From contig OZ241830.1 in assembly GCA_965202585.1 (NCBI GenBank), positions 71,982,001-72,046,000 of the forward strand: 64,000 nucleotides of DNA. The letters run 5' to 3'. This DNA is from Thalia democratica. Taxonomy: Eukaryota. A program made the position numbers and the translations under genes. The notes below the pieces were generated by a model. That model was not told the DNA's origin. It made no database searches and saw only the letters and a list, made by a program, of their open reading frames with translations. This document shows positions 3,442 to 62,159 of this stretch, one piece after another; positions within the stretch are counted from its first letter, which is position 1; each line of letters begins with the position of its first letter.

Positions 3442-3890
3442 AATTATTGCATACCATATTTATTTATATGTAATTAAAATTTATATAATTCTATCTCTAT
3501 CTTCAACCGGTATAAATAGGTATAGCAACTTAATTTAGTTATAAAATAAACAACAAAAACTATGAACAATTTATTGCCGTCACAAACAAACAATACAAAT
3601 GGGTGCGCGACGCTTAAGTTTTCTACACAATAATCTTATACGAACTTCAATATCGATAAAGGTGGAAAATACAATATTTATGAACGTAGAAATCCTATCA
3701 AAATTGTTTCATATCGTACCACAGCTTACGTCTTCGGCCTCGAAGTCTCACGTAAGCTGTTTTATATCGTTCTAAAGTTAACCTCTGCGGTCTCGCAATC
3801 CCAAGCCAACTATTTTGTATTGTACTGCCATTCACGTCTCCGGCCTCGAAGTCTCACGTGAAAAGCTGCAACTACTTCCACGAAGGAAGA
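3442..3890. repeat. 449-bp direct repeat, copy B
   Basis: Near-identical to 921-1369. Confidence 0.9.
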
Positions 3891-6358: not shown

Positions 6359-6906
6359 CTAGCAGTGGTAGATAACTGGGGTGTAACATCCCTTGTTGTA
6401 TCTTCTTCTGTAACAACAAGTTCTGCGACGGATGATTCTTCTTGGGTGGTAGGTTGGTCTGCAGTATGGAACGTATCCTCTGCTGTAACCTTTACCGTAG
6501 TATGATGGGCTGTATCCCTTGCTGTATCCTTTGTTGTAGTATGATGGGCTGTATCCCTTGCTGTATCCTTTACCGTAGTATTCGTCTGGGATAACCAAAC
6601 CTGTGATAATTATGTTTTTGGTAACATAAAACTATGTAAAATTTAAATTAATCCATAGTTATTTTTAGCATCGGTAAATTTCTTAAATTGCTTAAATTAA
6701 TTATACTTTAAATACTAGTAAGAAGTTGTTAATTTACTTAGAACAAAATATTTTCATTACTATTTACATCTTATTGTGAGATAAGACTTCTATTATTTAT
6801 AATAAAAAAAGTTAAACTTACCAGTTTCTTTTTCCATTGGTGGAGTGAATGGGTTTGGGATGGCAAGAGCTGCTCCAAGGAAGCACAAAACAACAAACAA
6901 TTTCAT
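6359..6906 (-). CDS. Small secreted Tyr/Gly/Lys-repeat, Arg/Cys-tailed protein, copy 1 (108 aa; exons 6906-6822, 6600-6359)
   Basis: Exon 1 is MKLFVVLCFLGAALAIPNPFTPPMEKET (signal peptide). A phase-1 GTAAGT..ACAG intron follows. Exon 2 is GLVIPDEYYGKGYSKGYSPSYYNKGYSKGYSPSYYGKGYSRGYVPYCRPTYHPRRIIRRRTCCYRRRYNKGCYTPVIYHC*. Two more copies lie in the window. Confidence 0.9.
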
Positions 6907-7042
6907 TTTGCTTATTTCTGTTTGAAATATGATAATTCTTCATCCAATAATCGAGCTTATATACATTTAGATGTAGCTTAAATAAACAAATCTTGTGGAT
7001 GTTTTCAAGTACCCTTAAGTTTATTTTTGACTTTGAAATTAA
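6907..7042 (-). promoter_or_regulatory. 5'UTR/core promoter of YG-protein copy 1
   Basis: TATATAAG on minus at 6956-6963. About 135 bp is highly similar to 57895-58031, and the GGGTACTTGAAAACA and ATTTGTTTA motifs are shared with copy 3. Confidence 0.7.
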
Positions 7043-9438
7043 TTACATGTAACTCACAAACTGCTCTTTGAAGCTTCAACTATACTGTTTGAAGCACTTT
7101 GTGTTGTTTTAATTAATTACTGTTATTTTAAAATTATTTGCAAACAAATATTAATGTTTTAAAATAAAGGTTTAACTGTTTTCAACCAATCAAGTTTCGA
7201 CATTTGGCAAATTTGTTGTCATCTATGAGATCATGCATGTTTTTCGTTTGTTTCATTGTAAAACGCAACTGTTGATTTTTCTCAACCACTATAATTAATC
7301 TTGTCATTAATATAATAACAGCAAGCCCACTTCTAAAACCTATAGTACTGCAAACATTTTATTTTGCATTGCTATGTGAGTTTTACATATTGTTAAATGA
7401 ATTTTTTATATATTATGTAAAAATAAAACTTTACAGTTTGTCAAATACATGGATGTGAATTTTATTATGCTTTTTATTAACCTATTAAGTAAATTTGATA
7501 AATAAACTCTTAAGTATGAAGTTAACCTTGAAAAAAAAAACAATAAAACTTGAATATATACTTCAAGTTTTATTTTCTTTATCAACTTTATCGAGTTTTT
7601 AACAAATTATCGCAAATCTCTTAAACTTTGTTAAATAATAAAATTAATTATCACCGTTAGAAGTTGTTACAGATCAAAGTAATAATTTACCACGGATATA
7701 GGTCTATAGATATTTAGAATTAAACCAATGTTTATAAAAATATAGTAAAGTAATTAAGCCGCTTCTATTTTATTAGGTGCAATTTTTTATCTATCAATAC
7801 GTATATTTTCAAAAATTTGATTAATCGGTGTATTTTTGTTGGTACTTCTAAATGCTTACAGCATAATCAAAAATACAATCGATTATATTTTTAATAATCA
7901 ATAATATGTTTTGATAACTTAGGTTTTATTATGAAACGAATCTATAAAATAATTTACCAAGTTTGAGTAAAAACTAAACACTTAATTTTACTTTATAAAT
8001 AACTGTTACGGTAAGTACAATAGAATACAAGTAAAGTAAAAAAGTACAAAAATACTAATCATTACAAAGTGCTATTGAAAAACATCGAATTAAATTTCTT
8101 CTGAGATTCACATTTACATACCTCATAAAAACATAATTATATATTTTATAATATCGTATTATTTTTTATAAACTAAAACAACGATGAGTGCAGCTCAAAA
8201 CAAACACTTTGAAATAAATACCCATAAAAAAATTGCTGTTGAAGTCGCTGGTTGTTGTTAATTTTTTTTCAAAATATCTAAAAAGCTATTAAAAGAGATT
8301 TTAAGCTTTTCTTATTTTACATACTTGCTGAAGATAGATTTACTACTAGAACTACAAATAAATCTAAATGTTGCGTAAGTTATAAACTAGAGTAAATTTA
8401 GACAATACACAGTAGACTACATAGTTAAACAATTGAAATATAAATAAACATTTGTATTGTTTTACAACAAAAATCTTTAGGATGGATGAAAAATTTATAG
8501 AGAAATTATTTATCATTTGTAGACAACAACGGTTACAGACATTTTTAGATTAGGTTTTATGTGTGAGATTGTTGACGATATTTTACTACGCTTTTTCGGA
8601 CTTTAGAGAGGAAAATATCTGAAACTGTTTTTTAAAGTAGAAAGTTCATGTCTCGCTAGACATTTTTTAAGAAAATAACTTTTCTAAGTAAAATTATCAG
8701 ATACATTTTTTTCACATCACAAGTCGATTAAGTTTTATATGTTGTTTAAAAACAGTCTGTTGTACAATATAAAATATTCAAAAACAGTTGTTTATAATAG
8801 GAAAAAAGTCTATAACGCAATAAAGCATGCTTTGATTAATATTTGCATAATCAGGGTTAGGTTACACAAACCCTTTGTTACTTGTTTACATAATTATACA
8901 TAGTAAGTTTGAAGGTCCCAACACAAAACATTTAAGCTATTTATTATTTTTCTAACTCGACTAAACACGTATGTATAAAATATATTGAGACTTTTAAAGA
9001 AAGTAAACAGCGTTTAAAACTTCAACAGCATTATTTTAAAAAAGCTATTTTTGTTAATTTAAAAATTGATCATAGCTTTTAAGAATTTAAATTGTGATTT
9101 TTATCACAAATTACTTGTTTAACATTTAATTGTATAAATCTAAACGAAAATGTTTAGAAAAACATAGTCAAATAAACTGCTTAAATATTTTTTTACAGTA
9201 GAATCTCTTTGACCTTAGTTGCATGCAGTTTAAACAAAGAAGATATATAAATTTTTCATTACTTCTTAAATTTAATACTTTTGTTGTGTAGAACTGTAGA
9301 CTCAGATAAATACTATTATAAAAAGTTACAATGCTTTTAAGTTTTAAATTTTAACTCAACACATGTTAGCTTTACTTTTATTTATCTATTTTAAAATCGT
9401 TCTTTTCTTTATTTTTTATAGATTTGAAGTAAACTATA

Positions 9439-12400
9439 ATGAAACATAATTATCCTACATTAACATTCTTTCTTCTGTCAATTTTGATTGAATCTGAAGC
9501 TTATGTACTCAAAGAAAATTCAGGTTTGTTTATATTAAAGTTTTAAATTTTCTTGTAAGATAATGTGAACTGTGAGATTTTTTATGAATTAAACTTTCAA
9601 ACAAAATTGTTACTATTTAAAATAATCGATGACTTATAAAGGTAGGTTTTGTCTTATGCTTTATTCTGTATGTAAAAGCTTAGAAAGTATAAATAACAGT
9701 AAATATAAAATTGGAACTTGGATTTTTTAATTTAACTGGTAACTTTTGTTTGTAATCCTTATTATACACATTAGACTAAAAGTTTTTAATATTCAGTTTG
9801 AATTCCAATTATAAAAAAATGCTCAAACATACGTAAGTTTAGCTAAATACAGTTGAATAAATATATATACATACGAACCAGAACAACCTTCTATAGTACT
9901 TAATTTTTTAGAAATTTTATTTCGAAAATAATCTTCTTTTAAAATTAACATTTTAAACATGAAAAGCAAAAAAAAAACGTTGCGTACTTTTTTAAACTAT
10001 TAATGTATAGATATAATCAGCAAGTAAACAAACTTCTATATACAAAAAACATTAACTTTGAACCCAAAAATGAAAATCACAGAACTTCAGACCAAAATAT
10101 TCGGAGGTAATCTTGCTCGAGATGGGGAATTTCCCTACAGTTGCTGGCTTTTCGCTTTCGGGGGTTCCCTGAACAGCTGCGGATGTTCGATAGTGACGTC
10201 AGAATGGGTAGTCACTGCGGCACACTGCGTACAGGGGTAAATGACTAAAAATAAATACAAATTGATGATCAAAACTTTAAACGTGCGAGTTCTTCGGTAA
10301 AAGTTTGTTTTAGACAACTGGATAAACACACAAGTATTATATCTGGTGACTTTAAAGTTAGCTTGAGAATTGTTCGAAACTTTATATGATTAGAGTTTTT
10401 GTATAGAAGCTGAATACTAAGTCTTTATAACAGTAGTGGTAGAGAAAATTTTCAAACGTAGATTTTCCATTAAGTTGTGGAACCTGTGAAAATATTACCA
10501 AAATTAGTAAAAAAAGTTTTTAAAAAGTGTTATATGCCGATGTACACAGTTTATTGTTAACTAATAAAAAACTGGAAATACACTGTAAAAAAGATATGAA
10601 ATTTTATTTTTGATAAGCTTTTCAATTTAAAAATTGTTTATATATAAGGTTCATTAAAGTTCTAATAAAATATTTACTAGAAAGATTGTTTTTAGTTATA
10701 TAATTTTTGATTTTTTTAATCACTTTGGTGCTGATTATAACCTTGATATTAATAGATATTTTTTAGTTAGTTTGATAATTGTAGGGTTTTGTACTGCAAT
10801 CTTATATACAAGCAATCTTTTGAACAAGTACTTTTTGACTAAAACTATATAGTTTCATTTTATATAATGTCTTTTTTATGTGTTAATACATGTTTTTTGC
10901 TGAATAGTAAATACAAAGCATGTCTTAAAATTTTTAATATCAAATATTATTTTAGAAAACAAATGAGCGTTATGACTATTTATGCCGGTAGCACTGATAG
11001 AACCTCTTCACTTAATCAGCAGCAACGTAAAATTTTACAAATTGTCTACAATGGTAGTTATTGTTTTTAATGATCATTATCTTTAATATGGTAAACTTAA
11101 ATAACATAAGTTATTTTTTTTATGTTTACAAAAATATAGTTCCATAACTGCTGTATCGTTAACTACTATAAATATTTTAATTGAATAAAGTTATTTAGTT
11201 CAAGTTAAAAAAAAAATAAACATCAAAATTAATCATTTAGTATTAGAATGATTTAATTTATAATGGCTTTAGATTAAAATCGATTTTTGATTTGCCTATT
11301 ACTTACTTCCTTAAAGCATTTTGTTAAGATAAAACTTCGAAAGCCACTTTACTAGAAGAAATATAATTTCGTATGATTGCTAATTTAACCAAGTTTTTAA
11401 AGTTTTGCTTTTTTAAAATACTTAACTAAGTTTAAAGAATAATTTTTAAACTTAAAAACTATTTTCATGTGTATGTTCACTAAAAGTACATTATTCAATT
11501 TAAAAGTTTCAAGCTAAAACAAAACTGTAATAAAGTTTTAAGTGTAATAGTTGAAAGGCTTCTAAAACAAACAAAATACACAAGTAATTTTTAAATATTT
11601 TCAAAGGAGAATAGCTTAAATGCGAGAAGTATTTATAGAATGTGTTAAGTTTATATGCTCAAACATATTTCGAACTAAACACACCTTGGTATACAAATAT
11701 ATCAAAGATTAAGCTTTTTTTTTGTGTTTTATTTAAGTTTAAAGTTAAAAAAAAAGTTATGAGAAAACTAAAATTATGAACAAGTATTTTTAGTAAATCA
11801 AGTTTTGTAGTTTTAATTAACTTTTACAATTAACAAAAAAATTTATTGGAAAATATACAAAGAGAAAAAATAAGTATTAAAAAAACTTTTTAAAATGTTT
11901 TTTAAATCTTCTTTGTATAAATAAAAGTTTTAAAAACCATAAAATTATTTACTCATAGGTTATGACTCATTGACAAGAAACAATGACATTGCTTTACTAC
12001 AACTTGAAACACAATTAACATTCGATGATTATGTAAAAAAAATTAGAATTCCAAAGAATGTAGAAGACATTCCTGAAAACTTTAATTGTTACGTCACGGG
12101 CTGGGGTGAAACTGGAGGTAAAACTTTAATTATATATTTTTTTGTTTTAAGATGTTTTCAAGAGTTGTTTTACAGTTTTAACTTGTAGATAAAAAAACTA
12201 TATAGTTTTAAACTGTAGTAATTATAGTTGATTTTATATAATTTTGAAACTAGTTGTTAAATAAAACAAAACAATAGCCTTAAAATTCAAAATTTGAAGT
12301 ACTCAAAAATAACCTTTGTTTGTACAATATATTATTCTTTTAGTTATGTAATAAACAAATTGGCCATACACTGTTGTTATGTACAAATACAGTAGAAGAA

Positions 12401-15400
12401 ATAGCTAAGAAGCTTTAAAATTAAAAAAAAAGTTAAATATCACATCAAAATTTTTGTTTTACCTAACTATTTTAACATAAACTTGAATTTTAGGAAGTGT
12501 ATCAATATACTTAAAGTATGGTGAGGTTGATATCATAAGCAATGACGTATGTGGTTCTTGGTTGAGTTCTGATGTAACTCTCACCAATTCTAAATTTTGT
12601 TCCGGGTAAGAATACATTTTATTACTGGTAACAGCTAACACTAAATATATGGTATTTTCTAAAGTATAAAGAAGCCGAGTTTTGGATATCATAACTTAAA
12701 TATATCTACTTTGTTTAAATCAAAAACAAAACCTCTCAAGTCGGTTTTAAAATAAATTGAAAGAGATTAAAAGTATTGTGTTTTAGATTTAATTAAAACA
12801 GTTTATTTCTTTATAAAAATCAAAACAATATTGCATTATGTAAAAAAAAGTTATAAAAACACAAGAATATTAATAAATAACACTAAACTGCTGAAAACTA
12901 TTAAAGTATATAACATTTTAAAACTACAAATAAGTTTATTATTTATACTCAAATAATACTTTTATAAATAGTTTTATTTATTTACTGTTTAAAACACAAA
13001 ATGACTTAGAAATGTAAATTTTAGGTTTTCTCTATAAAAAAACAAATTAAAATTTCCTAACTGTGTAGAAATAATTGTTTCTATTAATTTTGCCGGAAAC
13101 AGTCAATAAGTAGTTTTGTTATTTACAACCACAACATAAATACAAGCTAGGAAAAGTGGTTTTACCGCAACTTAAGTATTAAAAACAAATTAACTTGAAA
13201 ATAAAGTTTTTGTTTTTGTGTAAAAAAAATAAGAAGACGATTTTACGCAAGTAAAACTCAAGTATTTTTTTACTACCTAACAACAACAGTTATGAATTTT
13301 TTTAATAAATTGATACATAATAACTACAAAGTATTCATCGTATATCACTTTTGAAATAATTTAGCATGAAATTATGTTTTGGTTCAGAGGTTGAATAACA
13401 TTAAGGAGCTTGTATTAACAAACGTATAATTATTTTTTGTTTCTAAAAACAATAATAAACATGTAATTATATCGGCGACTCTAGTTTAACTGCAAACTGC
13501 ACATTGTGTTTATATTGCAACTTAGTACTTTCATAAAATTTTTATTTAATACTTCTTTGTTTATTTTAAAACGAGTTAAAGTGAAGTATCAATTTTTCAA
13601 ACATTATATAAGAAACATTAGGTAAGTAAAAAACCTCAATTTTGTTCTTATAGCTTAAAACTTTTCCAATCTTATAAAAGGAGACACTTACGTATGGTTC
13701 GGCAGCATTGGTTAAATATTTATAACCAGTTTTTAATTTAAATAACTTACTTACTTTATTTTAAACTAAAAATGTTAGTCTCTTTGGAATTTTAGACAAA
13801 ATTATATTAATATCGTCACAGTTAACTGTTTCGTTCTAAAGTTACAGTCGTAATAAAAATTATTTACGATTAAAAAAAAACCTTTAGTGAAAGACAGGCT
13901 GAAACTTTCATTTAAATTTATTTTTTCTAAAGACTCTTAATTCCTTTTTAAAACTTCTTTTTAAAACATTCGTAAGCTTTTAACTTTTTTTATCCATTTG
14001 ATTAAATTTTGCTGTCCAAAATATTTGTTGTACTGTTCATACCTTTTATTTCATCCAAGTGAACACCAAACTTACGACAGATCGAACGTGAGCACCACAT
14101 CAGCGTGTGAAGGTGACAATGGTGGTCCTCTGGTGTGCTACAATGAGGACATGAACACATCTTACTTGTACGGAGTTGTCAGCTACCTGGATACTTCGAA
14201 ATCTTGCGGTAGTGCGGAAAATCCGACTGTTTACACGAAAGTTGCTGATTACTACGGCTGGATTGAAAACACTACAAGTTAATATTTTCTAATTTCATTT
14301 TAGTAGCTTAACTGGATTTGTTATTGTTTCAAAGTATTTTGAACTTTTGTCGTTTAAGTAGTAAAACTTTAACACTTTTGTTGAGATTTTTAAATTATAA
14401 GTATCTATGAGTTTACTAAAATTATTTAAAAAAATCTTTAATAAAATTTAAAATTTGTTGTAAGCAATAAGTTATACAATTAAGCAAGATTTGTAAATAT
14501 TTTACTTTTTTTATATTCTGAAGTATTTTTGGTAAAAAATAAACGGTGATATACTCGATTTTTATTAAAAATAAACTTAACAAACAATGTTTAGGCCTAG
14601 TATACGAGGCTTGTGATGACCTGTATGATTGTACATGCGATGAAACATCCAGTTCTTTCATTAAATGTGAAGTTTCTGTTACTACTACTACTACTGAAGT
14701 CTCTGTGACAGATGATAGCCTAACATCAACTACTAACAGCCCAGTTCTAACGTCGACTTTGAATTATAACACCACTAGTACTTTAACTACGTCTTCGTCA
14801 AATACTTCTGAAAGTACATCCTCCAACGAAACAGACACAACAACTGTGAGTACAACATCTAAATCAGACTTGTTTAAAACAACAAGCTCGCTAAACTACA
14901 CGACAAAATTGATAGACGCTTCAAGTGTAACAGTTTCTACAAACACCACTTTACCATTAGAAAACAGCTTTGGTTCTACAAGTTAGTGCTGTTGAGATTT
15001 AAAACTTTTTAAAACAGTGAAAACTAATTTTTGGATTTTAACTGGTGCTAACTCTATTTACTTGTTTTGAAGCACTATAAAAATATTAGTTTATACCCGT
15101 ACTTTTGCTACTATCAATTTAAAATTTATTCAAATTAAAACAAAACATAGTTAGTTTTATATGTTTTTAAAGTTGTTAAAAGTTTTGCTATTTTTAGAGT
15201 TTATTCTGCTAAACATTCACAAACTAGTGGTAAGTAAATAACATATTTAATTTATTTTATTTTGGTTTTAATAGCGTTATAACTTAACTAACGCTAATAT
15301 AAACAACACTAATTCCAAAAAGATTACCATAGAAAATCATAAGTTTATAACGTAAAAAAGCTGTTAATAGATTGTTTAACAAACCTGTTAAACACGAGCA

Positions 15401-15608
15401 AAAATAATCTGTAGATTGAAAAAAAACATTTTAAAAGAAAGTTTAACTATAACTTTAGCTTAAATAGAAATAAAGGCAAACGTGTTCAACAGGATCATTC
15501 ATAAGCATTTGGTACATAATTGGACCCTCCATAGGAGTGGTTGTACTAGTGTCAATTGGAGTGTTTTGCATGTTCAGAACTTATTCACCGTCGACATCAA
15601 AAGCTTGA
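9439..15608 (+). CDS. Membrane-anchored trypsin-family serine protease homologue (pseudoprotease), about 435 aa; exons 9439-9523, 10083-10236, 10956-11053, 11959-12117, 12494-12605, 14081-14277, 14595-14981, 15493-15608
   Basis: Signal peptide, K|IFGG activation site, TAAHC, NDIALL, CYVTGWG, ACEGDNGGPLVC (Ser to Asn), PTVYTKVADYYGWI. Then a Cys-containing linker, a Ser/Thr-rich stalk and a TM helix (IWYIIGPSIGVVVLVSIGVFCMF). All splice phases are consistent. The last two exons are less certain than the protease exons. Confidence 0.8.
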
Positions 15609-18600: not shown

Positions 18601-19483
18601 TTCATTCGTTATAATCTTGTTACTACTTCAAAGAACACAACCGAAATACTAGGTTGAAAAACCACACACATTTACGTAAGTAAACTGCAACCATTTGTAA
18701 AACTACCTGAAATAACTCGGCCTCTAATTTTCTTAATCAAAATTGCTTAAGTGTGAAGTCATGCAAACTATTGCGACATTTGGTATTGAGAACAGTATTT
18801 GGTTTTGTGATATGTTTGAAAACAATTTCGTAGACCACACCTTCAAGTTTAGCTGCCGTTTTTGTTGTTTGATTTGTTTAAGTAAACGTTGGCGTAAGAG
18901 CTACTTAGTTTAGTAAACAAAAATCACAATTTCACGTAAAGGTTTGTTTAAGTTTAAACTTGTGGTAAACGTTAAAAAAAAAAACATTATTTACATGTTT
19001 ATAATTGTATTATATTTTGAATGTATAAACATTTACTCATTGCAAATTAAGTATTTGTTTAAGGTCATTTTTGAAATAACTTAAAGTTTTTTTAAATCAT
19101 AAAAAAAGTACTTTTTTTTTTCAACTAAACATAACCTTACTTAAGAAAATATTAGTTTATACTAAATTTAGCATACAAAAGTTTTACCATGTATTTGTTT
19201 TGATAAAAAAAATATACTATTTATGTATTTACTTTAGTTTGTTCGAAAGAAAGTTTATCATAAAAACATAATTTGTTTGTAAACAAACAGTTTTTTAAAC
19301 TTAAGCTTTTGTTTACCTTTGGCTTTGTCTACGAAAAAAAAAACCTGTTTATAAACAAAAAAAATCTTATAGTTCAATCTCAAAAACTGAGATAAATTAT
19401 AATTTTAAGTGTTATAAAAACTCGAAGGAAGTTTTTCCATTGTTTAAAACATTTCTTTATATTTTAAAATTTCAGTAAAGCAT

Positions 19484-20372
19484 ATCACAAAACACTTTAA
19501 TATTATATTTAAACTTTATAAACCAGTAAATTAAAAAGGTATTACCCTTTATTATGTATTTTCTTAGTAGAACTTTAATTTTAAATGTAAACGTAATTTG
19601 TATAACTTTAACTAGTAAAACCCAATAACTATTTTAAATTAGTTAATTTCGAAACAGTTTGATAAATAAATTTTATATAAAGGTGTTTGTCTTGTGGTAA
19701 CATGTATAGCTTAGTTGTAAAAATCCTATTATAATAAAACTTTAGAAGAAAGCAACTTACAAAATTGTTGGCAAATGAAGTTTGAAGTCACTTAAAATAA
19801 CAAAAAACCTTAATTTAAAAAGTTTATTTAAGTTTAACTAGCGTAAAATAAATTAAAAAGAAATAGATTATTTTGTTAACTAGTTTTAACTGCTATAAAG
19901 TAACTTATAGAGAAGTTTTCCCAATATTTTAAACATTTCTATATATTTAAATTCGCCAAAGCATGCCACAAAACAGTTTAATATTATATTTAAGTCTAAA
20001 AACCACAAAATGAGAAGGTTATAGCTTTCTATACTTTTCAAAATACAGTTTCTTATAATAATGCATAAACACAGCAGAAGTTTTTACTTTGTATTTACTT
20101 GTATAAAGTAAATCAAAATAGTTATTTTAACACTACAATATATCATAGTTAATTTCAAAACAACTTGACAGTTAAAGTATAATTAATAGTAATTGGCTTG
20201 TGGTTGGAATTGTGTATTGACGTAAAAAGTTTTGGGTGTAAGAAACTTAACATAGTAAAACTTTTGAAAAAAAAAAGCTTGTAAAATTGTTGGCACATGA
20301 AGTTTGAGATCGTTTAAAATAAATAAAAAGGTTTAAACTTAAAAAATACATTTTAGTTAAAGTAGCGTAAGA
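19484..20372. repeat. Old degenerate tandem duplication of about 500 bp
   Basis: Paired blocks about 480-520 bp apart: CACAAAACASTTTAATATTATATTTAA (about 19486 and 19967), TAGTTAATTTCRAAACA (about 19640 and 20147), AAAATTGTTGGCAMATGAAGTTTGA (about 19761 and 20283). Confidence 0.55.
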
Positions 20373-23341: not shown

Positions 23342-23490
23342 TATAAAACGGCGCGCGTGCACTCAAGCGTGTCGAAGTTCATTCGCGCACATCCGAGGAT
23401 AAAAAGAAGTTCATATTGAAATGCGAACATCGTGCCAAGAGGGTGCGGCGACTTCATTTTCGCCTCGCACCGTAGCTGGACTTGTTTAAG
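23342..23490 (+). promoter_or_regulatory. Putative TATA promoter and non-coding first exon of the large receptor gene
   Basis: TATAAAA followed by an isolated CpG-rich stretch of about 140 bp in AT-rich DNA, ending at AAG|GTTTTT. An acceptor lies at 26314, 20 nt before the ATG. Linking the two is inference. Confidence 0.3.
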
Positions 23491-29300: not shown

Positions 29301-32300
29301 TTTAAGAATTATCATTTTTTATTTAGGGCAGTTTGTGATTTTAAAATTGAATGATTATATGTTTAATAAACTAAAAACAATTTTATTACTTAGTTCTAAG
29401 GAACTTATAACTATATACTTAAAAGCTAAAATCTCTTAAACTAAATATTTACTTTAATTTACAGTTTCCTCAAAACTACTTTTAATTGAGTAATTCATTG
29501 TTTTTTAAATAAATTTGTTAATCAAAAAAAAGTCCAAAAATTAAATACTTAAAGTAGAGCTAACTGCTATCATACTTTTTATAAAATACTAAACCGCTTA
29601 TGGTATAGGTTTCTACATTTTACTTATTATTGTACGTATAATAGAAAAAAATAAGGTTCGAAAATGTTCACTTGAATTTTTGAAATTTTACATCTGTTAA
29701 GTTTCCGGGTAACAGTCTTAACGGTAGAATTAAGGGTTTAACTTAATTGTTAGAATTTTCGAAATAGCAGATTACATTGAGCAAGTGGAAGAAAAAAAGT
29801 TTAAGCCAAAATTAAATAAAAGCAAACAGAGTTAGCAAGCGTGCACAGACGTCAAACAGAAATATAATTCTTCAAAGCAACTGAAGCAAGGAAATTTTTA
29901 CCGATACTATATTTAACATTTTTCTTCTCCTAGTAGCTTATACGGTCTGTTTTTCAGGCTAATTTTAGGAAACATGACTTATGATGTTTTTAAAGTATTT
30001 AAAGAAAATATTTTTTTAAAGTTGTTAAACAGCTCCTTTGATAAAACAAGACCAAGTTAAAACAAATTGAACTTACTTCAGCTTTTGAAAAAAGCGTTTT
30101 ACAATGAATTAAAAGTCATATAAATTTGTGTATTTTATATATCGTGATCTTTTGGTAAATTGGATTTGGGTTACGTAAACTACTTTAAATCTAATTTTAG
30201 AGTATAAAATATCATTTCTTCAACTTTGCATGAGGTAAACTTTGTTGTGTTTTGTGATAAAGTACGTATTAAAATTACTACACTTTGTTCATACTTTTAA
30301 TAAAAGCAAAACGTTTTAAAACGTACACCACAAACCACAAAAAATACATTATACATAATTACATAAGTTCATGACCATCAGAGAATTATTAAATGCTTAT
30401 TTCTTATAATTTTTAATAAAATCCAACCTTTCTTTTAGTTAGCAATCGGTAGTTAACCAAGTAAATTTAAAACCGCTAACCAAAAACAGATTAACTTAAC
30501 TGATAATCTGAAAACTACTTTAAACTCAAATTTAACACGATTATAAACTTAGTGGTTTACAAAGTTTAACAATTATTTCATACGTTTTAAACTATTAATT
30601 TTTTAACTTAAAATTTTAAACTACTAATGCAGTTTATTGCTTTATTGATAGCAACCTATACTTCTTAAACAAACTAGTTACTAAACAAAGCTTTTTATTT
30701 TTTGTGTCTTGCAACAAACATAATTTTAGTCGTGTTTTAACATACCAAGCTGGCTTTTTCCGAGTACACTTTTGAGCAGACAGAAAGCATTCTGTTTAAC
30801 TTCAGTTCCGAGAAGTTCTAATTGGTAAACTATCAAAATCCACCCGATTAAATTCCACCTACGTTCAAAATCCACCCATTTTTTAATTTTTTTTATTATT
30901 TATTAATTTTATTTTAAAACTTTTTGCATTTTTTAAGTTTATTTTTATTTATTTTTCACTGTAACTGTTACCCCTAACCCTTACCCTCGATCGGTAAGCG
31001 GTTCTCGAATTTGACTTAGTGGATTTTGAACATGTCCCGTTCTAATTAGCCCGAAAGTTTCATTTCAACGTCATAATTCAACTTTCACAACTTTAAACTT
31101 TCAGGCTGAACGATCTGTACGGGGACGGCACGATACCCAGGGACGTGGCGACCAACGAGGGGCTGACGCTGAGGACGGGGGCGGACAACTCGGTGCTGAC
31201 CAGGCTGCAGAACGGGGACAGCAGGGACGTGGAGATGCACCCGCTGTACTTCACCCTCGAGCACGACCTGGAGAGCGAGACGGGAAGGTTCAACATTTCC
31301 TTCAGGGCCGGTACGTTTGATAAGTGGTTTTAATTAAATTTAAATGACTTCTTTTGTAAAACTGTTTATATGTTAATCTGAAGTTAAATTTAGCTTAAAC
31401 AATGTATTGCTTAACAACCAAAAATACGGTTTACTTTATTTATAGTTTTATTTTGAAATTCAATAGAGCATAAAGCACTCTGCTTTTTTTTAATTAAAGA
31501 TATTTTTTTTATTTATACTTACCGATACAGGCTTGTTTACTTAACTATCTATCTTAGTCAAAAGTAACAGCATTTAATAACTTTATAGTTAGTATAGCAC
31601 TCTAACTTCTTTTGAGGAAAAAATTTTCAAAGGTAGACGCTCATCATTTCTGATTTTTTGCTAATTTTTAATTGTTTACCAATACTAAAGAATATATAAA
31701 GATCTTTTTCGTTTTACGGTGTCAAATTAATTTGTTAGAAGTTTTGCTCCCGATACTCTTATTAGCTCTTTTTTGCCAAGTTTAAAAAAAAGTTAATGCT
31801 GTCATGTTTTTGCGATTAGTAAGCAAAAAAAAGTTTTATTGCTTGATATGTTATTCATTCAAAATATTTTTGCTACGTCATCAAAAGGTTTGAGTTAACT
31901 TTCCATACAGATGAGGACCTGTGCAGTAATCCAGCTGGAGTGGCACCGTTTTGTTTGAACGGGGGATCTTGTAACAGGGACGGATTTTTCACATACTCTT
32001 GCGAATGCATTCCTGGATGGACTGGGGATAACTGCGAAATTGGTTTGTTTTTTTATATTCTATCAATTACTATATATAAAAGTAAGATGTAAAAACTATT
32101 TAGGTTTTGCTACTTAAGTTACATGGCTTTAAAATATGTTTACAAAACTTTTTTAAAATTGTGACTAAGCTAGTTATCATATTGTATGGTATTATATAAT
32201 TTTTGTTGATAACCTGTTTTAATTAAATTTTTTAAATAAATATATAGTATTAGAAACAAATATTCGATTAGAATTAAAACAACGTATACTACTACAGTAA

Positions 32301-53144: not shown

Positions 53145-54618
53145 TTTAGTTCAATTTTACCATTAAAAACCCTTGTCATCCGATACAAGCTGAGATTATA
53201 AAATATATTATGAATCATTGGTTTATTGATTGAACTATTTTGTCATTTTTTAAAATATATACTTTCAAATACACAATAATCGATTTTAGCTTGCCTTTAC
53301 AGAGTAAAACACGATTATTTTCATCATTTAAAATTCAGCTGCATTTAAATCATTCGCAATTCTAATTTCTTCAAAGTTTTTGCTTTAATTTTGACTTTTT
53401 CTTCAAACGTTTTCTGCCTTGTTGTGTTGTTTTATTTTTTAATATTATGCAAGTTTATTTCTTGTTATATTTCGTAAAGAATAACGTATATTTATATGTT
53501 TTGTGCGTGCCATCAAGTCAAATGATGAAACTTTTGTTTTTTGATGGCAATTAACTATTAAAGTTTTAATTAAATACTTTTAATTGTTATATCAAAAAAA
53601 TATGTAGTTGTTTTGAAGCTCTACCGAACTAATCTCATTTAATTTTTTTACAAATAATATCTTAATTAATGTTTCATGTTTTTTTTATAGTGGCCTAAAC
53701 TAAAAGTTCTTTACCATATAGGTTTTAAAATATAGTATTTGTTTTTACTTAAAATAAATTAAGTTTATTGAAACTGTTGTGCTTTTTTTATTTATCTTAA
53801 GTGGCGCAAAAATGATTGCAGTAAATAAAATTTGAAATAACTTTTTTTGAAATTTATTACTTACATGGAATGTTTGGCACACCCTTTACAAAAACTTACA
53901 CGCTTTTATAACTTAAAACTATATAATGATGTACTTATTACTCACACTACAAATGACTGTTTATAAAAAATCGATAATTTAATCTTTATCATAATTACTT
54001 TAGAATTTATTAAAAGTTTGCAATGTAATTATTTTTTGTAAAAACTGAAACACATTTATTAATATAAAAATATTGATATAAAAACATATGGGTTATTTTT
54101 TGATTAATTAAGTATTCCATTACCAAACATTAACAGCAAGTAATAATTTTAATTTAAGAAGTGAAATTAAATATAGGGTTATATAATCATAAACGATTAA
54201 ATTAATTATTCAAGTGACTTTTAATTAAATAAAATGTTTTTTTGGTTATTAATTAAGTAACTTTTTCAAATGTGTATGCAAAGTGTTACAGTTTTGATTG
54301 CACTTATCTGATTTTTCATATATCATGAAAATTTTAGATAAAAATTAAAATCATTTGCATCAAGTTCTTAAATCCCATTAGTAAAAATTATGTAGCTTAC
54401 GTTAGCGTAATCAAAATTATACAAACATAAAAAAAAAACTAAGAAAAATTATTTTGTATTCAGCTCTAACTTTTTTAAAAATTACAAGGTTACTTTTAAC
54501 AGTTTTAACTTTTAGACGTGATTCAGAGTTGTTTTGTTTTATCAAAAGAGTTTTTTATAAACATTTAGTAAGTATTAAACGACTTTTGTGTTTAAAAAGT
54601 ACTTCACTATCCAACAAT

Positions 54619-54820
54619 AGTCTGAAAAACAGTCCATATAAGCTACTAGGAGAAGAAAATGTTAAATATAGTATCGGTAAAAATTTTCTTGCTTCAGTTG
54701 CTTTGAAGAATTATATTTCTGTTTGACGTCTGTGCACGCTTGCTAACTCTGTTTGCTATTACTTCAGTTTAGCTTAAACTATTTCTCTTACACTTGCTCA
54801 ATGTAATATGCTTTATTTAA
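54619..54820. repeat. Dispersed repeat, inverted copy of 29761-29960
   Basis: See 29761-29960. Confidence 0.85.
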
Positions 54821-57028
54821 GTTTTTTTTACCAGTTTAAGTGATAATTTTGGTTTTCATGACAAGACTGTTAACAAAAAAATTACAGTTCAAAAGTTTCT
54901 CTTATTCAAAAAACTGATAATTTGAAATCTAAAATTATTCTTTATAACAACACACACACAGTTTAAAGACAGTAAAGCAATAACACTAGTTGTTCAAATT
55001 AAAAAAAAAGGCTAAGCATTGAATATAATCTTAAGTATTTAGTTTTAACTCTACTTATTAGAAAATATTTAAAATGATTGAGATGCATATATTACTGTTA
55101 GTTTTTATCAACTCCTGTTTAGCGATAACAATGTTTTTGTAGTAATTTTTAGAAAAATAACTCTTACTAAAACTGATAAAGTACTGACCTTCACAGGTGA
55201 AATAAATACAGCCAAAATTTATTTTATTTATTACTTAATACTCTATTATTGATTTATTGTGGCTTTATACTGTTGTTAATATCAAGATTTATTCAATTTA
55301 CTTATTCAAGTTTATTTTTAAAGCCCTCTATTTACATAGTCCCATAACTAGAACAACTAAATAATTAAACAGTTCTACTTATAAGAGACAAATTATATAC
55401 AGTTTCAGGGTAATGATAGCTTTAAAACTTTGTGTTTTTCAATAATTTTTAAGATTGCAATCATGTTAAAAATAGTTAAAGGACAATAAGTTGATTGGAT
55501 TGTTTGTGGTTTTAATTTATTTATTGTTATTTTAAGCGATTTAAAGTAGTTTGTGTTTTATTTAACCTGAAAATAACACTTTATAACTATCAAAGATCCA
55601 TTGTTTTATAAGTAAAACGTTTATAATTATTCTAGAAGTTAATGGAGTTTATCTAAAAGTTTTGACATACCACTCTAAGCGAAAATTTAAATGAAAAGTC
55701 AGTAAAAATAGCCAAATCCAAAAAAAAGCCTTGAATGTTTTCAAAAGTAAATATACTTGCCATTTCGTCTTTTTTATTTAAAATATATGTCAATATTTTT
55801 TTTGTTACTTTACGAAATTTAAATTGATATTGACATTCAAGAGAAAATTTAATTTGTTTGTAATTTAGATTGCATAGACAACTATAAAATTGCTAGTTTT
55901 CTAGAATAAGAACTAAGTTCATAACTGCGATTAGCTTAATTGTTTAATCAAGAGAAAATTTCGCATTTTAATCTCACTTATTTTAAAATTTTTAAGAACG
56001 GAGAGCAAACGAATTTTTTGTTTTGTTTTCTAAGCGAAATTATAAGTCAGTTTTTTTAATACTAGTCTTTTTTTTGTAGTTCTAAAACCATATAACTCTG
56101 ACTAGTTTTTATTGACTCTTTTTTTTTTAATTAATAAAGCGGTATGTTTACTGTTAAAAAAATCTATTAACACGGACAACTAAAGGTTTTAAAATGCGTT
56201 TTTAATTTGATTGTGTAAAAAAAGATTAATTTTTTTTTTGTCGAAGCTATAAACATTTTTTCGAAATATTATTATTGTCGGTTTTAATAAAAGCGATTTA
56301 AAAAAAGCTCAAGCTAGAATACTTATTAAAATACAACCTTTTTAATAAATAATATTACAGAGTACAGTATGTTTTTTTTCTGTTTCGTCTTTGTTTTAAG
56401 TTTAGTGCTTTGAAGATTTTGTTCAAAGATAAAATATGATTTTTTTATAAAATATTTTAAAGTTAAGCATATGTTATTCTATTTTGTTTTCTTATCAAAA
56501 GTTTCAATGAAACAAACTAAAGTACATTAAAAATACTAAAAATGATTATAAAATAATTGACTGTTATGCGAGTTTAAATACAAATATTTTTTAATAACTA
56601 GACTTTTAGTGCTTTAGTTTTTAAGTAAATAAAATGCTTTTGTTTTGATTTACACTTTATTAGTAACGCTAAACAATAACTTTACGAGAAAGAAATATTT
56701 AATCTTGTTGTTGTATAGTGCTATCCATCTGAAAAATAAAACATAAATGAAAAATACACTAGTGAAAGTAAAACAAGTTGTTTATTTTTAAAACAATTTT
56801 TTTTGTAACCTAGATTAAACTTTGACAACCACGTTTGTTTTAAATTAATAAGTGGTAATATAAGAGTATTTTTTTAATAGTCGAAATTTTAAGTGTACAA
56901 TACACCATATGACTTTACATATGTGTTACAAATAAGTTATTAAGTAAGTTTAAGTTTAAAAAATACTTTGCCACGAATTTTAACTTAAATTTATTTAATT
57001 TGTTATAAGATTTTCAAACCTGTACAAC

Positions 57029-57894
57029 TTAGCAGTGGTAGATGACTGGGGTGTAACATCCCTTGTTGTATCTTCTTCTGTAACAACAAGTTCTGCGACG
57101 GATGATTCTTCTTGGGTGGTAGGTTGGTCTGCAGTATGGAACGTATCCTCTGCTGTAACCTTTACCGTAGTATGATGGGCTGTATCCCTTGCTGTATCCT
57201 TTGTTGTAGTATGATGGGGTGTATCCCTTACTGTATCCTTTACCGTAGTATTCGTCAGGGATAACCAATCCTGGGGAGATATAGTTGTAGACAAAAAAAA
57301 GAGCAAAAGTTAGATTTTTGAGTGAAACTAAAACATCAAATGATAAAGTAGTATAATTTTATTAATATAATGATTGTAGTACACAATAAAAACAGACAAA
57401 TAATTGAAAAAAAAAATTTTACGAATATTCTTTTATTTTTGTCAATCATCTAACAAATATCATATAACTTTAACGGATAATTTTTTTGCATTAGATAAAA
57501 ACAAACTTAATAACAGTTAATTTTTCAGATGTATACTTGTGGTAAAAAAAAGTTACATGTTCAACAATGAAATGTAACATTAGCGCACAACAGTTATCTA
57601 TTAAATAGTTTTTAAAATAAAGATTAAAAATCTCACTTTTAAACTAATTTATCTAAAATAAATTTAAATCAAGAAAAAGGGAATTAAAAAAAATCAAAGA
57701 TGTGTATTATATTGTTATAAATAACTAAAGCCTGTTTCGATCGTTAAACTTGATCATATTTTTATGATGAGATAAAAATTACAGTTTTTAATTAAATGAC
57801 TAAACATACCAGTTTCTTTTTCCATTGGTGGAGTGAATGGGTTTGGGATGGCAAGAGCTGCTCCAATGAAGCACAAAACAACAAACAATTTCAT
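57029..57894 (-). CDS. Small secreted Tyr/Gly/Lys-repeat protein, copy 2 (108 aa; exons 57894-57810, 57270-57029)
   Basis: Same structure as copy 1. Differs by L10I in the signal peptide and one YSP to YTP change. Intron GTATG..CCAG, 539 bp. Confidence 0.9.
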
Positions 57895-58031
57895 TTTGCT
57901 TATTTCTATTTGAAACATGATAATTCTTCATCCAATACTCGAGCTTATATACATGTGGATGTAGCTTAAATCAACAAATCTTATGGATGTTTTCAAGTAC
58001 CCTTAAGTTTATTTTTGACATTGAAATTAAT
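57895..58031 (-). promoter_or_regulatory. 5'UTR/core promoter of YG-protein copy 2
   Basis: TATATAAG on the minus strand. The block is alignable to 6907-7042. Confidence 0.7.
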
Positions 58032-58378
58032 CGTAATTAGATATACAAGTTGAACTTTGAAGTGTTATGTATATTTAAATTAACGATTTGTTGTTGTATT
58101 ATGAAATAAGTGTTGTTTTACTTAACACGTGCATGTAAAGTATAACCTGCTATAGAAGCCAATAGCATCAGTCCATTTGGCGAAACACTTTAGTATTGAC
58201 TACACGAACAGTTTTTATTTTTTTATTTTCTTAAATACACTTTAAACTATAATTGGATAATTTTATAAGTTGTTAAAACACTTATATTTTTTTGCTGTCT
58301 AAATGATTGTAAAACTGTGCAACTTAGCATATTAGTTTTTTATTTAAAACCCAATTGTTTAGATTTTTATATGTAAAC

Positions 58379-59523
58379 TAGTGATGTACCGGACCCACAA
58401 TTTTGAGTCCGGCCGGACCCGGATCCGACTTCGGATTTTTTTTTCAAATCGAGATCCGGCCGAATCCGGATACCAGACAAAAATGGCAATATCCGGCCGG
58501 ATCCGAACCCGGATAATAAGTCCGGTACAATAGTAGTTAAACAAAACTTTCATTCAACTAATGCGCCGTCAGTGAAAGATATGACGTATTGGTCTTTGAA
58601 TTAGTCCATATGTCTGTCGTAAAAGAAAAACTCAAAGACTTTTCCAGAAGTTTGGGAATATCAGACGTCAAATTTTGGTAAGCCCATTGAAGCATTACCT
58701 CGTTAAAATACTTTCTGCTTGGGATCAAATATCTTGGCTCTAAATGTGCCAAGAGTTTAATGAACCCTTTATCATTTACTATTGAAAACGGCTGGTTGTC
58801 AATAGCAATCATGTTGTTGATTTTCTCATTAACCATAATTTTTTTTGGATCATCTTTGCCCCAAGGCTTAAAGTTTTTAAAATCATTCATGGTTGATTGC
58901 TTCATAGCAGCGAGTTTTATTTTCTTTGGAGCTGAAGGCGAACCAGTGCTGCTTCTTGCCTTTTCTGATGAAGTTTTTTTTCGCTATTGTGTAAATCACA
59001 TTGTGCTTAGCAGATAAATGTCTATGTAAGGGAGTAGTACTATAAATTTTAAAATTATTACCCCTTTTGATTTTGTTGGTGCAAATTGTGCAAACAGCAA
59101 TAGCATCATCTTCTGAGCTTATGGTAAAATAACTTCACACAAATGACATAACTAATAATAATCTTAGACACTGTAACTAATAATATTAAATGTATTGATT
59201 AACTTTAATTTCTATATTTTTAAATTTTTTCTGTTGCACAAATCATGCCAAACAGATATCAATCTTTTCCACGAAATATTAAAAGTTTGTTTTGGAAAAA
59301 ATACTTTTCTGTATGCTCTTTTTTACTAACTAGATCCGAATCGGCCGGATCTCTGTTAGGATCCGGCCGGAACCAGATCCGAACCTTTTTTTAAAATTCA
59401 AGATCCGGCCGAAAGCGCATCCGGTTTTTTTCTAAATCGAGATCCGGCCGTATCCGGATATCAGACAAAAATGGCAATATCCGGCCGGATCCGGACCCGG
59501 ATAGTGATTCCGGTACAACACTA
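58379..59523 (-). mobile_element. Non-autonomous, internally deleted hAT DNA transposon
   Basis: 15-bp TIRs TAGTGATGTACCGGA (58379) and TCCGGTACAACACTA (ends 59523), 14/15 complementary. 8-bp TSD ATGTAAAC/GTGTAAAC (7/8). Subterminal GATCCGG/CCGG repeats and an internal transposase remnant. Confidence 0.9.
58558..59149 (-). pseudogene. hAT (Ac/ZBED-like) transposase fragment
   Basis: BED finger MSFV*SYF..CTIC..HLSAKH, with TGA at 59135-59137 where Trp is expected, then a frameshift. Then MIAIDNQPFSIVNDKGF..RYLIPSRKYF..SFTTDIWT..YLSLTAH, truncated shortly after the first catalytic Asp. Confidence 0.88.
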
Positions 59524-61536
59524 GTGTAAACTAAACAATATTATTTTCTTAAAAACTTAAGTAAATATGTAAAATATTTTCCATCCTTTGCTGTTGTTTT
59601 ACACGAACAGCTTATTTTTAAAACGATTCTGATTTTTAAAATACACTTGAAATTTTATTGGAAGAATTGTAGAAGTTTTTAAGCCACTTGTTTTTTTTTT
59701 TTTGCTGTCAGAACTTTGTAAAACTGTGCAATTTAAATTAGTTGTTTTTTATTTATAAACTAAACAACTATATTTTCTTTTTTAACATAAAAGATTAAAA
59801 ATAAATCTTTCATTTGTGACAGTTATATAACTTAAAGAGACAACTCTATACTTAACTCTATTTTTCTAAAATATCTATTTTTGTATTATAAACGCTAATA
59901 AGCTCCTTATTATTTTACAATATGTTTAGATGTTTTACTATACATTTTGATTTTGATTATTGTTTTAATAGTTATTAAATTCGTATTCTATACAATTCAA
60001 CACAAAAAATTCAATGACAAAATACAAACTTTTTTTTTATCACAAAATATTGATTAGTATGACTTTAAGAGCTGATTTAAAAACATATGCAGTGCAAAAA
60101 AAAACAGTTTTGTTTATTACCTGTTTTCTGTAAGTTTTACTGACCTTAATAAATTTACTAATAAGTTAAATAAAAAAACATACGTTTATTCAATACGTTT
60201 AATTTATTTAGACAAAGCAGAGTTTTTTCATGCATAATTTTTGTACAAACTCACTTTGGTGGGACTTATTATCAATCAAATTTAATTATAGAAATATGAA
60301 AATACAATTAGACTTTTTCTAATGAGGTATACGGTTAATTAATCAGAAATTTTTTATTTGAATAACAATAATTAGGAAATTTTGCAAAGCTATAGTTTAA
60401 GTACATTTAAAAACATTTTTTTTAAGCATTTTATAAGAAGTATAACTAAAACTTTTGTAACTATTTTTTTAAACTCAAAAGTTACAAGTAGTCGATACAT
60501 TTTAAAGATTTTTGTAAAAAATATAACTATTAACATGATTTAAACTAAATACAAAACAAAAAAATATTAAACATAATAAAAATCATTAATGTTCATACCT
60601 ACTTTCACCCCTATCTTAAAAAAAATACAAAGAAATAAACAATCAACATGCTTGGTAGTCTTTAAGTTAATTATACGTACCAGTGGCGTCGCGTCAAGTG
60701 GAGCATTAGAACATATGCTCCGCGTAAAAACAAAAAACTTTTATAACATTATAGTACTCCTAAACTACAGTGTTATCTTTTCTTAATAAAATTTGTTTAC
60801 AAGCGATTTTATATAGCTGTAGAATTTTTACTTTAATAAATTGGTTTTAAAAGTTATAAAATTAAAGATTTCAAAAATATTCGTAAACTTCCGCAATTTC
60901 TTACAAAAATACCACAAGACGCCATGTTGCTGCGATAGCATAAGTTCACAAGAATGAAACAGTCTTTTTAGAAAAATTAAGTAAATAACTAGTCTAATCT
61001 ACTTTTACAAAAGATACAATATAGACAACACGAACATAGGTGTTTTTTCGATGATGCTTTATATATACATACGTATATAAACATATTTGAAAAATACAAC
61101 ATTTAAATAAAAGTTAAATTTCTGTACATAATTTTAAGTTTAATGTCTTAAAAAAAAACTAAACTAATTATTGTGTTAAAAAGTAAAGTTATACAATGCT
61201 TCAGACAGTAACATTAAAATAAAAGTGTTTTAAGAACTTGTAAAAATGTATTTCATTGCAGTCTCACTTGTACATTAATTAAAATAATTTAAAATTAGTT
61301 AGAAATACAGAATTTTCAAGTAGTCGAAACTAAAGTATTTTGCCAAATGGAGTAATTCTATTGGTTAATGCATGTATAACATTGCTTCCATATTATATGC
61401 ACGTGTTTCTGGTCATTGGTAAAACAACAATCACTGTACATTACAACAACAAATCAGTTACTCTGTACACAACAAACTTCAAAGCCGAAGTTAAGTACCT
61501 CGTTATAATTAATCTTTGTGCCAAAAATAAACCTGA

Positions 61537-61644
61537 GGGTACTTGAAAACAGACAGAAAATTTGTTTATACAAGCCGTTTCCAAATGTATATAAGCTCGA
61601 ATATTAGATGAAGAATTATCATATTTCAAACAGAAATAAGCAAA
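61537..61644 (+). promoter_or_regulatory. 5'UTR/core promoter of YG-protein copy 3
   Basis: GGGTACTTGAAAACA..ATTTGTTTA..AAATGTATATAAGCTCG (TATA 61588-61595), shared with copies 1 and 2. Confidence 0.7.
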
Positions 61645-62159
61645 ATGAAATTGTTTGTTGTTTTGTGCTTCATCGGAGCAGCTCTTGCCATCCCAAACCC
61701 ATTCACTCCACCAATGGAAAAAGAAACTGGTATGTTTAACTTTTTGTTGTGAGTAACAAGACGTAATTGTTAATTAAAGAAGTTATTTCTATATACGTTT
61801 ATAACTTCATACAAGTATTTAAAATTTTACTTTCACCACAATCTATAAATCTTACCGAAACTAAAAGTACTTATAGATTATTTTATATCTTAATAGTTAT
61901 ACTTGACTTATATCATACTTATAACACAGGTTTGGTTATCCCAGATGAATACTACGGTAAAGGATACAGCAAGGGATACAGCCCATCATACTACAACAAA
62001 GGATACAGCCCATCATACTACGGTAAAGGTTACAGCAGAGGATACGTTCCATACTGCAGACCAACCTACCACCCAAGAAGAATCATCCGTCGCAGAACTT
62101 GTTGTTACAGAAGAAGATACAACAAGGGATGTTACACCCCAGTCATCTACCACTGCTAA
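61645..62159 (+). CDS. Small secreted Tyr/Gly/Lys-repeat protein, copy 3 (104 aa; exons 61645-61729, 61930-62159)
   Basis: Same as copies 1 and 2 but missing one 12-nt KGYS unit. Intron GTATG..ACAG, 200 bp. Confidence 0.9.

Follow-up and report, generated by a model that had tools for sequence, protein, structure and literature searches.

Mussel foot proteins mfp-3, -5, and -6 are small, secreted, basic proteins rich in Tyr and in Gly, Lys, and Arg; mfp-6, a small plaque protein, also contains many Cys (11%, beside ~16.5% Tyr) and is cross-linked through its thiols as cysteinyl-DOPA (DOPA, 3,4-dihydroxyphenylalanine) (PMC13208468, PMC9418609). In the salp Thalia democratica, three genes (A, B, and C) within a 64,000-nt stretch of the genome, hereafter the window (C6:71982001-72046000), encode proteins with a predicted signal peptide, Lys-Gly-Tyr repeats, and a tail rich in Arg and Cys. 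These share the small size, basic charge, and Tyr-rich composition of the mfp group; however, the sequences are unrelated, the salp is a tunicate and has no byssus, the Cys are confined to the poly-Arg tail, and no tyrosinase exon was detected in the salp genome by an exon-wise search, which is a weak negative.

Plant extensins are likewise built of basic repeats rich in Ser, Pro, Tyr, and Lys; their Tyr residues are cross-linked by peroxidases, and the proteins bind acidic polysaccharides. The extensin matrix is cellulose-based, as would be that of the salp proteins given their putative location in the tunic. The salp proteins differ in having SPSYY and KGYS units and no Ser-(Pro/Hyp)3-5 (SPPP) blocks, and in an Arg/Cys tail that is absent from extensins; the two show no homology. 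High-Gly/Tyr keratin-associated proteins and protamines, too, are small proteins of clustered multi-copy genes, in which the number of Cys varies and serves intermolecular disulfides, and the Arg-Cys-Tyr tail of the salp proteins looks protamine-like, with a sub-threshold match to Protamine_P2; these classes are however intracellular or nuclear and have no signal peptide, while the salp proteins carry one. Two-domain crustacean and β-hairpin antimicrobial peptides (AMPs), such as penaeidin, arasin, tachyplesin, and gomesin, resemble the salp proteins in placing a cationic Arg/Tyr/Cys-rich C-terminus after an extended Pro/Gly-rich part, but their Cys frameworks are fixed where the salp framework varies, and there is no Pfam match. 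The family is a member of none of the mfp, extensin, keratin-associated protein, or protamine classes: homology was tested and not found, and the defining motifs are absent. It is classed as an orphan family specific to its lineage, which by composition falls among the Tyr-rich cationic secreted material proteins.

Gene structure, transcription, and copy number

The window has 27.4% GC and contains no N. The motifs MEKETG, LVIPDE, KGYS, PSYY, RRIIRR, and TCCYRR each occur three times within it by motif search: on the minus strand at ~6.4-6.9 kb and ~57.0-57.9 kb, and on the plus strand at ~61.6-62.2 kb. An earlier interpretation made from the letters of the window (the sequence-only reading) had described these motifs in an architecture of signal peptide, KGYS/PSYY repeats, and the tail RRIIRRRTCCYRRRY, and this is present as quoted at all three sites; its residue counts also agree with gene models A-C, which contain 17-18 Tyr, all in exon 2, and 5 Cys.

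Gene C lies on the plus strand and encodes 104 aa (coding 61645-61729 and 61930-62159). Its TATA box, TATATAAG at 61588..61595, stands ~30 nt 5' of the cDNA start and is kept in every copy. Exon 1 (61618..61729) contains the 5' untranslated region (UTR) at ~61618-61644, the ATG at 61645, and the signal peptide MKLFVVLCFIGAALA followed by IPNPFTPPMEKET(G); RNA contigs span 61639-61730 of this region. Intron 1 (61730..61929; 200 nt, GT..AG, phase 1) has its joint in 4 RNA contigs of run X4 and an RNA depth of 0 inside. Exon 2 (61930..62168) encodes LVIPDE, the KGYS/PSYY Tyr repeats, and the Arg/Cys tail; the stop at 62157-62159 is followed by 9 nt of 3'UTR. Intron 2, within the 3'UTR, extends over 62169..62663, as RNA contigs exit at 62168 and resume at 62664, and exon 3 (62664..62760, 3' end approximate) is 3'UTR with an AATAAA at ~62732-62737.

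Genes A and B are on the minus strand, and each encodes 108 aa. Exon 1 of gene B (57810..57921, ATG at 57894, TATA at ~57944-57951) is separated by intron 1 (57271-57809, 539 nt) from exon 2 (57020..57270, coding 57270-57029, stop 57031-57029), and intron 2 (56729-57019) leads to the 3'UTR exon 3 (56635..56728, 3' end approximate). In gene A the corresponding parts are exon 1 (6822..6933, ATG at 6906, TATA at ~6956-6963), intron 1 (6601-6821, 221 nt), exon 2 (6350..6600, coding 6600-6359, stop 6361-6359), intron 2 (5850-6349), and the 3'UTR exon 3 (5755..5849, 3' end approximate); intron 1 of both genes is GT..AG and phase 1, as in gene C. Each gene therefore has three exons, which carry the signal peptide with a short N-terminal piece, the KGYS/PSYY repeats with the Arg/Cys tail, and the 3'UTR, respectively. 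A second frame is open across exon 2 (..TTVKDTARDTAHHTTTKD.., at 6334-6609, 56998-57309, and 61897-62178 of the window). This frame (TTVKDTARDT...) was considered as coding and rejected; the transcripts P0014, P0016, and P0042, which switch into it, look like frame-shifted assemblies.

Evidence from RNA confirms that the genes are real, transcribed, and spliced. A word-indexed search of 5.8 billion proteins gives 15 matches of 71-85% identity, all from a marine eukaryote transcript catalogue (merc), and these cDNA-derived proteins continue through the predicted splice (..KETGLVIPDE..). Several of them begin with GINAEYMG, a translation of the SMART template-switch oligo, and continue with IIFQ[TI]EISK, to which the 5'UTR of the window genes translates; these must be cDNAs of full length, and they place the transcription start at ~61618, 30 nt past TATATAAG. 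The gene stretch is contained in 22 public runs of RNA and DNA from 10 studies, 13 of them RNA. Between 61300 and 62500, contigs of 3 independent RNA runs cover only 61628-61750 and 61915-62201, and the GT..AG joint 61729/61930 is visible in them; unlike these, DNA contigs from a related organism cover the flanks of gene C too. From one metatranscriptome run, 1046 contigs are placed on the gene C region. Expression, which the sequence-only reading had left to be checked, is thus seen in marine metatranscriptomes both as spliced cDNA proteins and as exon-only RNA contigs with the GT..AG joint.

The two exons of that reading are both present; a third, non-coding exon however exists in each gene. 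Past 62168 the RNA contigs read ATGGA[CT]AGCAC.., and because this continuation is located at 62664 in gene C, 5849 in gene A, and 56728 in gene B, with a conserved AATAAA downstream in all three, it is assigned to an exon behind a 3'UTR intron.

The claim of a three-copy family stands for the window, which holds three intact copies, but not for the genome. A copy search of the 802 Mb assembly finds six intact copies of this subfamily: three in the window, two at 3-8 kb to its left (C6:71973674, minus; C6:71978725, plus), and a sixth on the unplaced contig C1700 (1,977 bp); nine further copies belong to a sister subfamily. The head-to-head pairs D/E and B/C have similar introns and promoters, which shows them to be inverted duplicates of one another. 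From copy to copy, identity is 97-98% in coding sequence, 50-85% in introns, and ~50% in 3' flanks; synonymous (pS) and nonsynonymous (pN) differences, summed over copy pairs, are 0.066 and 0.007, giving a pN/pS of ~0.11. In the related organism's DNA, exon 2 shows 2 differences in 158 positions, compared to ~9% in the flanks. By these comparisons the family is under purifying selection and is selectively maintained.

Codon choice in the family is nearly absolute: TAC is used 88 times and TAT 0, AAC 16 and AAT 0, and CAC 10 and CAT 0, while CCA accounts for 54 of 55 Pro codons and ATC for 25 of 28 Ile codons; neighbouring exons outside the family use mixed codons. As the preferred four-fold codons end in A, the bias is not a simple effect of GC content. 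A pattern of this kind usually marks a gene with very high expression, and the bias explains the low pS in part.

Sister subfamily, variation, and relatives

A genome search with promoter and exon-1 DNA returns the five C6 copies, the C1700 copy, and three weaker matches on C10 and C115, which have 80% identity across the end of the 5'UTR and the signal peptide. The latter mark a subfamily of five-exon genes. Exon 1 of the sister gene encodes MKLIVLIALVGCALA, then IPNPxPE.EYGPANGLxIP; next come three micro-exons of 57-60 nt, symmetric and in phase 1, of which the first encodes a variant of 19 residues, DLPSPAEKYGPANGLKIP, and the other two DYHPYTPKEKYGPTNGLRIP; the last exon, with a poly-Arg tail of 6 Cys, encodes DQYYQKGYSKGYYHPVRCVPVRRRYRCLPRRRSRCIRRRRPRCYGRRSYAKGCGIHHFIC. 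A search with the terminal exon finds nine sister copies, three on C10 (C10:36850293, 36874273, 35775331), one on C115 (C115:29416), and five on C5 (C5:63320897-63569800) (L017-L033), and transcripts of the marine catalogue match the sister gene models (P0018-P0036).

Both subfamilies have the signal peptide and IPNP start, a YY.KGYSKGY unit, and a tail motif with a final Cys. The sister genes differ in their three extra micro-exons (60-nt units encoding DYHPYTPKEKYGPTNGLRIP), in having just one KGYS-type Tyr unit, in a longer tail with 6 Cys, and in other intron positions. The signal peptide with the IPNP start aligns at 99.2% in hhalign, D[EQ]YY.KGYSKGY is matched at E 7e-5 by BLASTP, and a tail-only hhalign of RRR..CY.RR.Y.KGC ending in Cys scores 44.1 compared to 7.9-29.7 for 30 column-shuffled controls; intermediate transcripts also connect the two, such as DEYYGKGYSKGYYHPRC.. 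and GKGYSRGYYGKGYSRYNRC... By these four comparisons the C6-type and the five-exon subfamilies are homologous sisters. In total, the family has at least fifteen genes, three of which are in the window.

Among 23 complete transcript-derived members, the Pro/Tyr (A) units number 1-4 and the KGYS-type (B) units 1-3, mature Tyr content is 9-19%, and net charge ranges from +9 to +20. The features kept throughout are the signal peptide with its IPNP start, one or more YY.KGYS units, dense clusters of Arg with Cys between them, and Cys as the last residue; the kept tail motif is IRRR..CY.RR.Y.KGC....C-end. The family is thereby shown to have a block design, in which 1-4 Pro/Tyr/Lys units of 20 aa are followed by one or more YY-x-KGYS Tyr units and then by a protamine-like Arg/Cys tail ending in Cys; the mature proteins are ~11-16 kDa and strongly basic. 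Cys spacing varies, and the tail contains 5 Cys in 13 of 23 members, 6 in 9, and 7 in 1; one further member (P0049) has 3. An odd number of Cys, from which a free thiol had earlier been deduced, is accordingly rejected as a trait of the family, its counts running from 3 to 7.

Relatives of the family come only from unnamed marine sequences. An exhaustive phmmer search of 1.84 billion representatives returned three clusters, all unnamed marine transcripts from merc, and no mfp; a profile of both subfamilies retrieves 54 proteins, again all unnamed and from merc. Pfam searches, made with exon 2, with full-length transcripts, and with the sister tail, yielded no match above threshold, and no AMP family at E up to 1; the sub-threshold, compositional matches are to Sulphur globule protein and to Protamine_P2 (PF00841), the latter with 14-16.7 bits against a cut-off of 25 (E 0.01-0.07) and with sister-subfamily members only. 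The PDB sequence search gave just a chance match to PBP1a in which the Cys are not aligned, the ESM Atlas feature search gave no usable match, and a 2026 PNAS paper on tunicate holdfasts contains no protein sequences for comparison. The family is therefore as unrecognised as the sequence-only reading had it, with no match to a described family in the BLASTP-type check that it proposed. Elsewhere on C6, a secreted Tyr-rich gene (C6:490646-495000, L023) has GKTYGG and TYTPSYGKK repeats, and its K.Y[ST]PSY.GK resembles KGYSPSYYGK; a link to this gene was not established, as no shared signal exon was found.

By these sequence comparisons the family is shown to be lineage-restricted, in a pelagic tunicate. 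The mitochondrial COX1 gene has 32 AGA/AGG codons at conserved Gly positions (e.g., FWFFGHPEVY, GGGDP, IPTGIK, LP-G-x-G), from which genetic code 13, that of tunicate mitochondria, is assigned; the pelagic habit follows from the occurrence of the transcripts in open-ocean metatranscriptomes. The intact mitochondrial gene is on C1833, and nuclear mitochondrial DNA segments (NUMTs) with COX1 copies containing many stops lie at C4:56842736-56945724 and C757:31294-32138. As a tunicate marker GH6 was not detected in the genome by an exon-wise search; one weak exon of GT2 was found. The published T. democratica genome is 790.7 Mb with 25.3% GC, the lowest among tunicates (PMC13746493).

Predicted properties and function of the proteins

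The proteins of the window are arranged as MKLFVVLCF[IL]GAALA, IPNPFTPPMEKETGLVIPDE, YYGKGYSKGYSPSYYNKGYS(KGYS)PSYYGKGYSR, and GYVPYCRPTYHPRRIIRRRTCCYRRRYNKGCYTPVIYHC. The signal peptide has a classical A-x-A cleavage site (the A-L-A motif), which supports predicted export by sequence logic and upholds the earlier claim of secretion. The mature protein is 11.0 kDa with an isoelectric point (pI) of 9.7 and a net charge of +13, and is composed of 19% Tyr, 12% Pro, 11% Gly, 11% Arg, and 5.4% Cys; the Tyr block contains many YY pairs and begins with D-E-Y-Y, and the tail has a pI of ~10. AlphaFold2 modeling with the family alignment gives a mean predicted local distance difference test (pLDDT) score of 45.7 and no fold, with the mature part, tail included, below 50; this points to an intrinsically disordered protein, however short disulfide peptides are often badly predicted, and the confidence of the model is too low for a fold search.

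The acidic piece NPFTPPMEKETGLVIPDE had been taken as a possible propeptide. No dibasic or furin site is found in the gene-model proteins between IPNPF..LVIPDE and the Tyr block, and NPFTPPMEKETGLVIPDE can be aligned with NPYTPKEKYGPxNGLRIPD, the unit that the sister micro-exons encode; it is a single degenerate copy of that 20-aa unit and no propeptide, and the claim of a pro-piece fails.

The favoured reading, for which the balance of belief is even, is that the proteins contribute to a bulk extracellular material, as a disordered cationic linker or glue, either of the tunic with its cellulose and anionic glycans or of the mucous net used in feeding. Such a role would suit the 19% Tyr, pI of 9.7, and net charge of +13, the lack of a predicted fold, the varying number of repeat units, and the symmetric micro-exons from which the sister genes are built. 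The chain would act as a two-block polymer, with a Tyr/Pro/Lys/Gly block joined to a protamine-like Arg/Cys block. Tyr and Arg are the strongest cation-π/π-π "stickers", and coacervates of polycations with sulfated or acidic polymers form even when salt is high. The Arg tail may bind polyanions, either sulfated glycans or acidic giant matrix proteins, while the Tyr and Arg blocks would associate by cation-π/π-π contacts, with self- or complex coacervation as a possible outcome; intermolecular disulfides between tail Cys would then lock the assembly. Further locking would probably come from dityrosine or halotyrosine links made by peroxidases, instead of from DOPA made by tyrosinase. The genome contains at least seven animal haem peroxidase genes, including a tandem array of ~4 (C2:10647465-10744618) and further single genes on C1, C6, and C8; compared to these no tyrosinase or phenoloxidase exon was detected, a weak negative, and the DOPA modification that had been suggested is left unsupported. 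A narrower version, in which a single chain with Tyr and Arg blocks self-coacervates as an "extensin analogue" and cross-links an animal cellulose wall, is a new idea and a tentative one.

The sequence-only reading had offered an adhesive or structural protein and a defence peptide side by side. The structural or adhesive option remains the best fit, and defence is the main rival. In the defence alternative, which is possible but doubtful, the Arg/Cys/Tyr tail would be an antimicrobial module deployed on or into the tunic or mucus, possibly disulfide-stapled or dimerised through its C-terminal Cys, with the Tyr/Pro repeats as spacer or anchor. A net charge of +9 to +20 and a tail pI of ~10 would suit such a cationic host-defence protein, as would the lineage restriction of the family and its tandem multi-gene clusters on three contigs; the two subfamilies have a strongly conserved signal exon (hhalign 99.2%) but differing mature parts, and crustacean two-domain AMPs (penaeidins, arasin, hyastatin) also join an extended Pro/Gly-rich part to a Cys-rich C-terminus. 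The Cys framework is however not conserved, with 3, 5, 6, or 7 Cys at variable spacing; in addition there is no processing site between "pro" and mature part, AlphaFold2 predicts no amphipathic or hairpin fold, Pfam gives no AMP family at E up to 1, and the paralogues are under purifying and not diversifying selection (pN/pS ~0.11). Cross-linked material proteins typically vary in Cys framework and in repeat number, which Cys-stabilised antimicrobial folds typically do not, and a cross-linker or glue is favoured over a folded AMP because Cys and repeat numbers vary while the Arg tail motif and C-terminal Cys are kept. Several points nevertheless weigh against the cross-linker or glue. The Arg-rich tail would probably kill bacteria in vitro whatever its native role; tandem clusters with a conserved signal and divergent mature parts are also typical of defence peptides; and the tail is the most conserved part of the proteins, which may mean a specific target in place of generic cross-linking. 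No homology to any known structural or adhesive family was found by Pfam, phmmer, or profile search, and composition is not homology; finally, no exon of tyrosinase (PF00264) or haemocyanin-type phenoloxidase (PF00372) was found in the genome, though this negative is weak because the same exon-wise method missed GH6.

Two other proposals are far less probable. The proteins could be dedicated Tyr scaffolds for halogenation or iodination by peroxidases, as massively expressed carriers, iodinated or brominated in the tunic or in the endostyle secretion, that harden the matrix or deliver iodotyrosines to the gut; this is improbable, although it would draw on the 19% Tyr content, the many YY pairs, the D-E-Y-Y at the start of the Tyr block, and the haem peroxidase genes with their four-gene tandem array. 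Ascidian iodoproteins are reported in the endostyle, pharynx, and tunic (PMC12992692), and thyroxine forms more readily where the acceptor Tyr is preceded by an acidic residue (PMC11730217); however, the Glu-Tyr context of the window genes is replaced by DQYY or DHYY in the sister subfamily and so is not conserved, and the hormone precursor identified in Styela is a large Tg1-domain protein (PMC12992692). The least probable proposal is a polyprotein akin to hormone or neuropeptide precursors, from which cleavage at Arg clusters or G-K sites would release small peptides. It would account for the signal peptide, the repeated short units, and the RR/RRR clusters of the tail, but no dibasic sites border the repeats, the Arg clusters have Cys set between them, the number of units is free to vary, and the codon bias and apparent abundance fit a bulk product.

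Genomic surroundings and significance

Other genes and repeats share the window with genes A, B, and C. On the plus strand, the region 11943-14983 contains trypsin-like serine protease exons (Pfam Trypsin, E 1e-9 to 1e-11) and, after them at 14543-14983, a Thr/Ser-rich, mucin-like open frame of 147 aa; together they may encode a protease with a mucin stalk. A large multi-exon gene at 31847-52591 (plus) contains many exons for calcium-binding EGF domains (EGF_CA, E 2e-16) and at least one weak fn3 exon; its EGF exons at 37.1-40.7 kb are local duplicates (repeat families D1, D2, and D4, with up to 96% identity). Between genes B and C, the minus strand carries the remnant of a hAT-type transposase (58561-59134) with a BED zinc finger (E 4e-8) and a weak match to the Hermes DNA-binding domain. 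A 300-nt direct repeat (920-1219 and 3441-3740, 98% identity) and a 157-nt inverted pair (29766-29922 and 54656-54812, 94% identity) are probably copies of transposable elements.

Salps are among the most abundant grazers of the ocean, and their tunic and mucous net are materials of unknown protein chemistry. The family described here is restricted to pelagic tunicates, is apparently abundant in metatranscriptomes of the open ocean, and lacks named relatives; a gene model and a name are now available for dozens of anonymous Tara-type transcripts. By joining a Tyr-rich block to a poly-Arg/Cys block, its proteins pair the two strongest "sticker" residue types for protein condensation. If they serve in iodination, they would provide a compact, non-thyroglobulin route to iodotyrosine chemistry in a chordate; if they serve in defence, they would be a new class of tunicate antimicrobial. 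Should the proteins instead be matrix cross-linkers, they would parallel the wall proteins of plants in the sole cellulose-making animal group, and would offer a compact template for salt-tolerant underwater adhesives.

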